This document shows positions 45,155 through 48,798 of a stretch of 64,000 nt of DNA, in pieces. Each line of letters starts with the position of its first letter. The first letter of the stretch is position 1. The stretch lies in the NCBI GenBank assembly GCA_964247055.1, contig OZ176050.1:2542001-2606000 (forward strand), written 5' to 3'. The DNA comes from Paragordius varius (taxonomy: Eukaryota > Animalia > Nematomorpha). Made by a program: the position numbers and the translations under genes. Below the pieces are notes generated by a model. It did no database searches. It saw nothing but the letters and a program-made list of their open reading frames with translations, and was not told where the DNA came from.

Positions 45155-47609
45155 ATGTCTTCAGCAGAATTTAATAATCCAAATCCTTTAAGGAAATTTA
45201 AATTGGTATTTTTGGGGGAACAAAGCGGTATTACATTTTTTCTTAATCCTTTCTTAGTTGGTAAAACATCCCTTATCACTCGATTTATGTACGATAGTTT
45301 TGATAACACATATCAAGTTTAATAATTTTTAATATAACAATAGGCGACTATAGGGATTGATTTTTTATCCAAAACCATGTATTTAGAAGATCGGACAGTA
45401 TTATTTTTGCTTTTATAAAATATTTCAGGTTAGATTACAGTTATGGGACACAGCTGGTCAAGAACGCTTCCGGAGTCTCATTCCATCTTATATAAGAGAT
45501 TCAACGGTTGCAGTTGTTGTTTATGACATCACAAGTAATGTCATCGCATTAATTTTGAAATATATAAAGTCAAATTGTTAAGTAAAGTTAAATGTAAAAA
45601 ACAGTCTTAAATTTCCTAACTCCATATTTAACGACCATAATTATATAAATACCAGGGTGCTCATCATGGGCCGTATTTTCAACCACCAGTCCCGATAAAT
45701 TAAATATAAGGATTAAGAAAATTTTTTTAGATTTCCATAAAACTGCGAAAAATATGAACACAATAACAAAACCATTTATTTTATCAATTTTAGCAAGTCC
45801 CTTGCCAAATGGAAACGATAAAAATAAACATGGGGATTAAAAAAATTTTTTAGATTTCAGATATAAAACTGCGAAAAATATGAACACAATAACAAAACCA
45901 TTTATTTCACCAATTTTAGCTACCCCTTGCCAAAATTTGGAAATTCATATTTAGAAATCATTTAAGGAATATCAATTTGCTAAAATTTAATTTATATATT
46001 AAAATACTTCTTTGCATTATTATTTATTTAATGCACAGGGCCGCATTTAGGACACCCCTGTTAATTTGGAAAAGGTTAAGGGTCCAAACATATGGCAGAC
46101 CATTCCGAATTGCTAATCTTTATCAAAATATTTTTATAATTTTATATCTATTTAAAAATCTACTGTAACTTATCATATTTTTTCCAAAATTCTTTTGGAT
46201 ATTTTCATCAATTTATTATTTCTTTAGATTCAAATTCTTTTGCCCAAATTACGAAATGGATTGATGATGTGAGAGCTGAACGTGGTAATGATGTTATCAT
46301 TATGTTGGTGGGTAACAAAACGGATTTATCTGAAAAAAGGTTTATCTTTAAAATAAAATGCGATTTACCTTTTCAATACTGCATCGAATATATAATTTAG
46401 ATTTAGAAATATATTACGGTATATAATATTAATTAAATATATAGTAAAAGAATTCATAATTTGATTTCTTTACATAAAAATTTATTTTACTCATTGTCCA
46501 TTTAAAAGATTCACATATGAGTTATTAGTTTCAGTTAATTTTATTCACTTTTTACGACTTATTTGACATAAAATTCCAGAATATTTTTTTTATAAAACAT
46601 TTGTAAAAGTTTACAGTTTTTTTATAATATTCAAAAATTTCTTAGACAAGTTAGTACCGAAGATGGGGAGAAAAGAGCCAAAGAATTGAATGTAATGTTT
46701 ATTGAAACGAGTGCAAAAGCTGGTCACAATGTTAAACAGGTATAACCACTAAATTTACGGTTACATTATATAAATTCATTTATAGTTGTGTTGGTTTTTT
46801 TAAAAAAAGTAATTAGTTTAAACATTGAAATTTGTTGAATATTTTCGATCAATATTATGTAATTATTAGATTTATTAATATACTTGATTATTATCCATCG
46901 GCGAATTTTGTTTTGCTAGATTGATTTACAATTGATATTTGCGGGTATTTTTTTAACAGTATTAGCGGTGACCGATATTATTAATCTCAGTTGAATTATT
47001 TATAATTTTATAAATATTTTTTTTCTTTTTTTAGCTATTTAGACGTGTCGCTGCCGCTTTACCAGGAATGGAAACCCCAGATGCTCGAAGAGAAGATAGT
47101 AATATTATGCCTTATTTATTTCATTAAACTTTCTATAATTTTTGTGATCAAATTGGTAATTGCTTGAATTAAGTCTATATATATGTGCACGTATGTATGT
47201 TTTATATTGTCATTTTTATACGTGGCTTGAATTAATGTCATATACCATTTACAGTTCTAATTCACCCTTAAGCAATTCGAATTCGCCCTAAAAATAAATT
47301 ATGTGTTTTAGGGCTAATATAACTAATCATTAATATGTAATGTATCTTTATGGCATAGTTTATTATTTTTCGATATTATTTTCATTTTGAACAAAATTGC
47401 ATTCTTAAATCTATAAAACATATATAGGTAATTTTTAATCTTAAAAAACACATAATTTATTTTATTGTGAAATTGAAGTGTAAATGGGTATATATATTTA
47501 ATCGTTGCTTACCTGTATAAAATAAATGTATGCTGCTTTAGTGATTGAAGTAAAGCTTAAGGATACACCATCAGACACAAATGCCAAAGCTTCTAATTGT
47601 GCTTGTTAA
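45155..47609 (+). CDS. RAB6: Rab6 GTPase, isoform using last exon 8a
   Basis: Exons 45155-45227, 45258-45316, 45344-45397, 45429-45534, 46228-46339, 46646-46739, 47035-47098, 47542-47609. Reads [45 protein letters not shown]...[20 protein letters not shown]...GNKTDL...ETSAK...NCAC*. Confidence 0.97.
47241..47492. mobile_element. Short copy of the 32311 foldback-like MITE in Rab6 intron 7
   Basis: TATACCATTT ... AAATGGGTATA termini. Core is homologous to 32440-32615 in the opposite orientation, with only 1-2 repeat units per arm. Confidence 0.7.
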
Positions 47610-48093
47610 ACCAACACACAGAACAAAACAACTTCACACATACATGTATAAAATATTTGATATTCCCTAAAAATCCTTCCAAACTCTTTTAATCCTGCCT
47701 CAAAAAACGCCAAATTTAACAACAGCCATAATATTGAATTTTAATTACCGCCTCCCCTATGTCTGCTAGATGACCCTCTATTAAATGATGCATAAACGCT
47801 CTTTTTATTAATTACATATATCTGTACTGGCATGTATTTATTTATATGGTTTTAATTGTATATGGATTATGCAATATTAAATGGTTTTAACATTATATTC
47901 ATTATTTACATGATGAAAATTAGGTGTAAAGTGTGTAGTGTATCTAATATTCATAGGTATATAGATATTTAAAATGTATAACGTTTTATATCACTATCTT
48001 ATGTTGTTACCTATACCAATATTATTTTTTGATTATTTTTCAATTTTTACTAAATTACTAGTATATTACCCGAAATGCAAAAAGCCGTCACAA

Positions 48094-48430
48094 CAGGGGT
48101 GTCCAAGACAAATGGCTTAGCTGGCTACATTTTTTAAAAAATAAACTAATGTTTACCTTAAAGACCCGAGAATCTAATTTTTATCAAGAATGTGATATTC
48201 ATTAATTAACGGCCTGAAAAATTAATTAGACCTATATTGAAAATGGTGTTTTTGGCTATAGATGTATTTGTGCATAATAAGACATGAACAAACAGATAAT
48301 TATTTTAAAGCAATTTTAACTAAGATATGATAAATAGAATATTTTTGCAAATTATAGAATTTATATGTAATTTATAATCTTTCGCGGGTCGAATAAAAAG
48401 TCGCGGAGGGTCGTGTGTTGGACACCCTAG
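48094..48430. mobile_element. hAT-derived MITE, about 337 bp
   Basis: CAGGGGTGTCCAAGACA ... TGTGTTGGACACCCTAG, similar to the TIR of the 30035 element. TSD is degenerate. Confidence 0.6.
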
Positions 48431-48730
48431 GTCTAAAATATCGAGTTTTAATCTTTTCATTTTTTAAATTAGTCATTTGATAAATGGATAAATATGATTA
48501 AAATAAGGCATTCCGGTGTCATATTTGGCTGTCCAATATAAAAAAATCAATTATTGTAGCATTACGCATTTTTCAATGTATTTGTCGTTGGAACAATTTT
48601 ATATAATGTCTACGTTCTAATCAATTTTGCATGTTAATATTACTTGTAGTTTTGCTTGCTATATATTAGAACACTGCATATGACTCAATTCATATGGCAT
48701 GAAAAAAATTATTTTAAATTTATTTAACAG

Positions 48731-48798
48731 CAATAGCCCTTAAACCTGTAAATGCCGATTATAACTATAAAGCTACTGGAGGAAGTTGTGTGTGTTAA
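48731..48798 (+). CDS. RAB6: Candidate alternative last exon 8b of Rab6 (TIALKPVNADYNYKATGGSCVC*)
   Basis: TTTAACAG acceptor, phase 1 matching exon 7, same 68-nt coding length as exon 8a, ends in a CxC motif then a stop. Confidence 0.7.

Follow-up and report, generated by a model that had tools for sequence, protein, structure and literature searches.

A candidate second tail exon in the Rab6 gene of a hairworm, in a layout shared with a mite, a beetle and a crinoid

The tail of a Rab protein decides the membrane on which that Rab sits, and Rab6 is the main Golgi Rab. In the hairworm Paragordius varius (Nematomorpha) the Rab6 gene is followed by two exons at which the protein could end, which raises the question of whether both are used and whether the second is peculiar to this animal. 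The locus was analysed within a stretch of 64,000 nucleotides (assembly GCA_964247055.1, contig OZ176050.1, positions 2,542,001 to 2,606,000 of the forward strand), referred to hereafter as the window; positions are counted from its first letter. Reading of the sequence from 44500 to 49500 placed a Rab6 gene on the plus strand, with seven shared exons and then two candidate last exons:

45155-45227, plus strand: exon 1, ATG start, 24 residues, phase-1 end; followed by a 30-nt intron
45258-45316, plus strand: exon 2, P-loop, (V) and 19 residues; followed by a 27-nt intron
45344-45397, plus strand: exon 3, 18 residues; followed by a 31-nt intron
45429-45534, plus strand: exon 4, switch region, 37 residues
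46228-46339, plus strand: exon 5, NKxD region
46646-46739, plus strand: exon 6, ETSAK region
47035-47098, plus strand: exon 7, 21 residues and one further nucleotide, shared donor, phase-1 end
47542-47609, plus strand: exon 8a, candidate proximal last exon, 68 nt, canonical a-type tail
48731-48798, plus strand: exon 8b, candidate distal alternative last exon, 68 nt, b-type tail

The ends of exon 3 (45397) and exon 6 (46739) were set by eye at GT donors, and every intron of the gene runs from GT to AG. The shared exons sum to 562 nt, so that exon 7 ends in phase 1. The best matches of the exon 4 peptide in the PDB were Rab6B, Rab6A and Drosophila Rab6, with E values of 3e-18 to 6e-18 as compared with about 1e-9 for other Rabs, and the peptides of exons 5 and 6 matched Rab6 fragments. 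Because the exon 5 peptide was found at one locus only in the 110.5-Mb assembly, this is the sole Rab6 gene and, on its sequence, the one Rab6 orthologue of this AT-rich genome. The G+C content of 27-28% agrees with the 26.9% reported for Gordionus; RNA-seq data have been reported for Gordionus montsenyensis (10.1101/2023.06.26.546503).

The preliminary description of this DNA had claimed that exon 7, ending in phase 1, can join either 47542-47609 or 48731-48798. Coordinates, acceptors and frames all fit this. The donor of exon 7 reads GAA GAT A/gtaata. The acceptor of 8a (..gctttag/TG) gives Met as the junction residue, and the tail ends in NCAC-stop. The acceptor of 8b (..tttaacag/CA) gives the junction codon ACA (Thr), and the exon reads (T)IALKPVNADYNYKATGGSCVC-TAA, a tail of 22 residues that ends in SCVC-stop. 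The two exons are thus equivalent, both having 68 nt, an AG acceptor, an open frame and Cys-x-Cys followed by a stop, as had been described from the same letters. Exon 8b is unique in the genome. Close to its start each tail carries a hydrophobic motif, VKL in 8a and IAL in 8b, at the position of the REP-binding C-terminal interacting motif of other Rabs (PMC3504004). Since the motif and the CxC site are kept in each, both tails should be geranylgeranylated; and since the CxC double-geranylgeranylation signal is the same in both, any difference between them must sit in the 18 residues upstream. Two other elements were considered and rejected: a donor inside 8a (GAA/gtaaag), which on splicing to 8b leads to an immediate stop, and an inverted repeat between the flank of the exon 7 donor and the flank of the 8b acceptor as a looping element, whose -16.8 kcal/mol lies at the 45th percentile of the background.

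Other animals were then searched for the same arrangement with a tick Rab6 model (P0054), which was scored on residues 1-134 only, so that the tails could not bias the ranking. The arthropod and echinoderm Rab6 models listed showed two types of tail after the same junction. In Zootermopsis nevadensis, isoform X3 has an a-type tail, ..KPPED/MQEVVLKDTPNEVKNQEGGCTC, and isoform X2 a b-type tail, ..KPPED/TVDLQTHPPQQNDQQDSEGGCMC. The b tail was also present in Polistes dominula X2 (whose cluster has 73 members) and Artemia franciscana X2, while the crinoid Antedon has ..NE/LIDIKLDP..GGCAC (a) in isoform X1 and ..NE/HDVIIPKP..AGCYC (b) in isoform X2. In all, RefSeq isoforms with a tails and b tails were seen for termite, wasp, brine shrimp, barnacles and crinoids. 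Two metatranscriptome contigs, of 1026 and 1003 nt, encode complete proteins with the b tail, of 210 and 233 aa respectively; contigs of that size carrying full-length proteins can only be spliced RNA. In three further genomes the exons themselves could be set beside those of the hairworm:

Window: exon 7 end GAAGAT A/gtaata; 8a 68 nt; gap 1121 nt; 8b 68 nt; junction residues a/b M/T
Blomia tropicalis (dust mite, L035): exon 7 end GAAGAT A/gtaagt; 8a 68 nt; gap 289 nt; 8b 68 nt; junction residues I/T (ACA)
Rhamnusium bicolor (longhorn beetle, L037): exon 7 end GAAGAC A/gtatcc; 8a 68 nt; gap 3033 nt; 8b 71 nt; junction residues M/T (ACT)
Antedon mediterranea (crinoid, L036): exon 7 end AATGAA C/gtatcc; 8a 74 nt; gap 1593 nt; 8b 68 nt; junction residues L/H

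The common layout is an exon 7 that ends in ..E[DE] and one base, a proximal a tail and a distal b tail of 68-71 nt. The junction residue of tail b is Thr in hairworm, mite and beetle, and that of tail a is M, I or L. Conservation of exon 8b, which had been proposed as a check in relatives, was seen across more distant animals, with an exon in the same place and phase and of about the same length in mite, beetle and crinoid; 8b is almost certainly a coding exon that has been maintained. The proposal that exon duplication made two tail isoforms from one gene stands in so far as there are two real, phase-compatible, equivalent exons. A local origin does not stand: the a-then-b layout of mite, beetle and crinoid indicates that the duplication is old. 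The two-tail layout is a conserved feature and not an invention of hairworms.

Comparison of the tail sequences placed 8a readily. It fits the canonical a-tail pattern [MLIV]x[ED][VI]xL...CxC, and without the CxC end its pairwise scores were 28-49 against arthropod, sea-star and L004-group a tails and 16-23 against those of Antedon and locus L010. A profile HMM made from 35 distinct a tails gave 8a 19.8 bits and 8b 0.5 bits. The tail closest to 8b was the b tail of the mite, (T)IPLKPLPLDSDTKTEDGGCIC, with a score of 34 without the CxC end and 10/22 residues identical; this score was reached by none of 20000 shuffles, and CAAT forms the first four bases of both the hairworm and the mite b exon. 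Likeness of 8b to insect b tails was weak. An HMM built from four pancrustacean b tails gave 1.9 bits for 8b and 1.7 bits for 8a, and hence no separation. As that model does not discriminate, the orthology of 8b rests on place, order, phase, length, junction Thr and the pairing with the mite. Judged by these alignments, the b tail is evolving fast.

Relatives were also sought exon by exon, by an exhaustive search with exon 5 and by word searches with the open frames that contain exons 5 and 6. The matches were for the most part ORFs of exon size on DNA contigs. At five of the loci (L004/5, L007, L008 and L014) exon 7 and the a tail are fused into one exon, and no second CxC tail was found in the 1-9 kb that follow the fused exon. 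Loci L009 and L011 showed one tail only, with up to 6 kb of following sequence covered; the sequences of L006 and L010 break off too soon for tails to be counted. The single-tail loci of several lineages indicate that the b tail can be lost. As candidate relatives of the hairworm, the Rab6 loci from these searches were not supported: none aligned with the window outside the exons, and the neighbouring genes of L008 and L004 had no match in it.

Sequencing runs over the locus were examined as well. Of nine runs found, four contained the Rab6 locus, and these are DNA, since all of them cover the Rab6 introns. No exon-exon joint was present in the contigs of runs X1, X3, X4 and X5 over 44900-49500 (4601 letters), the locus-bearing runs being DNA-like, and no contig of the putative RNA run X5 matched 44900-49500. 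The only joints in run contigs sit in a very abundant repeat in intron 7, at about 47210-47517.

These observations are best accounted for if 8b is a maintained and used alternative last exon, which we consider likely, the window gene keeping an old two-tail layout. The exon 7 donor would join either the proximal 8a, with its canonical hypervariable tail, or the distal 8b, which lies 1.1 kb beyond it. The a isoform would come from splicing to 8a and proximal 3'-end cleavage, and the b isoform from skipping of 8a; a separate 3' UTR and poly(A) site would be required for each last exon. The outcome would be two Rab6 proteins with an identical GTPase domain and different membrane-targeting tails. 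We infer that the junction 47098-48731 is probably used in this worm, and that the two isoforms would differ in the membranes to which they are targeted.

The simplest objection is that 8b is a meaningless open frame that happens to end in CxC-stop, as might be expected of an exon of only 68 nt in AT-rich DNA with many AG dinucleotides. The window contains five CxC-stop motifs in 128 kb (both strands), and only those of 8a and 8b are preceded by at least 19 open codons. A background of 524 kb, both strands, was assembled from twenty samples of 10 kb each from the same chromosome and the remainder of the window. It held 24 CxC-stop motifs, of which three had a phase-1 AG acceptor giving an exon of 44-101 nt; none of these three pseudo-exons was 68 nt long. 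At that rate the 2 kb after 8a should contain about 0.01 such sites, and far fewer at equal length. A chance origin of 8b is therefore very unlikely (about 1e-2 if length is ignored, below 1e-3 if the length must match), and the match of 8b in place, phase and length to the b exons of mite, beetle and crinoid leaves this explanation with almost no credit.

A more serious alternative is that 8b is a relic, an ancestral b-tail exon that is still recognisable and now idle, so that the a isoform alone is made. The complete loss of the b tail in other lineages is in keeping with this, as is the lack of a 47098-48731 junction in the DNA-like run contigs over the locus. However, the acceptor, the 22-codon frame, the junction Thr, the ILKP-type start and the CxC-stop of 8b are all intact. 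Exons 8a and 8b are identical at 32/68 nucleotides, or at 25/59 once the final 9 nt are set aside (p about 0.009 by shuffling), whereas their flanks, with 29/100 and 49/150 identical positions, are at random level and retain no likeness to each other. The exon copy must therefore be old, and an equally old neutral copy would have lost frame and motif, which argues that 8b has been under selection. Divergence between samples points the same way. In introns and intergenic DNA, sample X4 shows 7-10% divergence from the window, whereas its contig over 8b (196 nt, counted whole) shows three substitutions and a single inserted nucleotide (at 48801, past the stop codon), or about 2%, similar to coding contigs. 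In exon 3 a divergent haplotype has two differences (45355 and 45394), both third-position and synonymous. A relic would require a very recent loss of use, and we regard it as unlikely. Still less probable, in our view, is an arrangement in the manner of K-Ras4A/4B, in which 8a would be a cassette exon with its own stop, 8b would always be 3'-terminal, and the a isoform would carry 8b untranslated with a single poly(A) region; the same two proteins would result. Poly(A)-like hexamers are frequent after 8a and 8b alike, which would suit this arrangement, but being frequent after both exons in AT-rich DNA they do not discriminate. No conserved donor was seen after the stop of 8a, and the spacing of the exons, 3.0 kb in beetle and 1.6 kb in crinoid, is typical for separate terminal exons. 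Separate use of 8a and 8b as last exons thus remains our preferred reading.

If the second tail is conserved and used in this way, it would mean two Rab6 pools from one gene in invertebrate cells, and the deep conservation of exon length, phase and junction residue provides a concrete, testable isoform pair. The occurrence of the layout in a crinoid, chelicerates, pancrustaceans and a hairworm allows a wider suggestion, which we make only tentatively and hold to be somewhat less probable than its opposite. The two-tail Rab6 may be ancestral to Bilateria and apparently lost where exons 7 and 8a fused, with a fast-evolving b tail sending part of the Rab6 pool to another membrane or partner; this isoform would seemingly never have been studied, the main models being described with one tail. 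The preliminary description knew of no report of such a gene. The isoforms are already present in RefSeq models, so that as far as databases go the claim of novelty fails, while no paper on alternative Rab6 tails was found in full-text searches. The hairworm gene extends to another phylum a kind of two-tail Rab6 that is annotated but apparently undescribed.

Its closest counterparts are the RefSeq models with a and b tails themselves. With them it shares the phase-1 exon 7 after ..E[DE], the proximal a and distal b tail of 68-71 nt, the CxC-stop and, among ecdysozoans, the Thr of the b tail. It differs from them in that its b tail is far from insect b tails and near only to that of the mite, and in that its isoforms are predicted from genomic sequence. 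Vertebrate RAB6A and RAB6A' differ in an internal exon, used in a mutually exclusive way, by which a few residues of the G domain change. They belong to the same Rab subfamily and are likewise two proteins made from one gene by means of a duplicated exon, but the window holds no second copy of an internal exon, each of exons 1-7 matching the 64 kb once only. Among Rabs with alternative splicing that alters the C-terminus, RAB28 has C-terminal splice isoforms, two of them with a prenylation motif (PMC7326575, citing Brauers et al., 1996). Unlike Rab6, it is farnesylated via a CAAX signal, and its isoforms come from a different exon arrangement. Alternative C-terminal exons are also well known (10.1101/366369, PMC10883850, PMC5945503) for CDC42, with a prenylated and a palmitoylated form, and for KRAS4A/4B. 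These belong to other GTPase families with CAAX/CCaX signals and other lipid chemistry, whereas both Rab6 tails end in CxC; common to all of them would be the exchange of hypervariable region and lipid anchor on an unchanged G domain.

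The first three introns of the Rab6 gene (+ strand) are short:

window 45228-45257, +, intron 1, 30 nt
window 45317-45343, +, intron 2, 27 nt
window 45398-45428, +, intron 3, 31 nt

Because intron 1 is open and in frame, exons 1 and 2 lie within a single 71-codon open frame. Intron 2 carries three 1-nt insertions in a divergent haplotype found on comparison of run X1 contigs with the window, while the changes in exon 3 of this haplotype are synonymous only. Across window 44900-49500, contigs of sequencing runs X1 and X4, which bear the same species label as the assembly, differed from it at 7-10% of intronic positions and 0.7-2% of exonic positions. 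Two haplotypes seem to be present in run X4. The divergence of both runs from the assembly reflects either high diversity or cryptic species.

Repeats were observed in introns 4 and 7, the latter containing a MITE-like element with inverted ends at about 47240-47490:

window about 45700-45790 and 45830-45920, intron 4, tandem units of ∼90 nt (sequence reading)
window 47245-47265 / 47467-47487, intron 7, inverted-end pair of the MITE-like element
window 47291-47309 / 47445-47463, intron 7, second inverted pair of the element, 100%

The tandem units are near-identical (..ttttttagatttc..aaaactgcgaaaaatatgaacacaataacaaaaccatttatttt..). Contig word depth at the MITE-like element was ∼2,000,000, as compared with ∼900 in its surroundings, which makes it one of the genome's most abundant repeats. 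Reading of the sequence also revealed, between the candidate last exons 8a and 8b, short G+C-rich ends of the type CAGGGGTGTCC.. and ..GGACACCCT, facing each other ∼340 bp apart (48090-48435), and a similar end in intron 4 (46040-46065). These may belong to another small inverted-repeat transposon family.

The C-terminal tails encoded by 8a-type (a tail) and 8b-type (b tail) exons were followed in other Rab6 genes. In a deposited model from the mite Blomia tropicalis (P0476; locus L035, GCA_029204025.1), a single protein contains the greater part of the a-tail exon spliced to the exon for the b tail (..EGRCS|SIPLKPL..GGCIC). This model is probably wrong, since in the DNA of the locus the two exons are separate and each ends in CxC-stop. 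An insect-like Rab6, P0438, is a full-length, transcript-sized model from a Logan contig of 921 nt, which ends in ..KPPED|SILLQKIENTSPANDTVESCFC. Its tail ends in CxC, yet begins like the intron 7 read-through of several models (EDSILL..), and may represent a third Rab6 tail, arising by extension of exon 7.

In the animal Rab6 genes at L004, L005, L007, L008 (three ENA assemblies) and L014 (32-37% G+C), exon 7 and the a tail form one exon. No b tail was found in the 1-9 kb of sequence downstream of the fused exon at these loci. Loss of the b tail seems to coincide with loss of intron 7.
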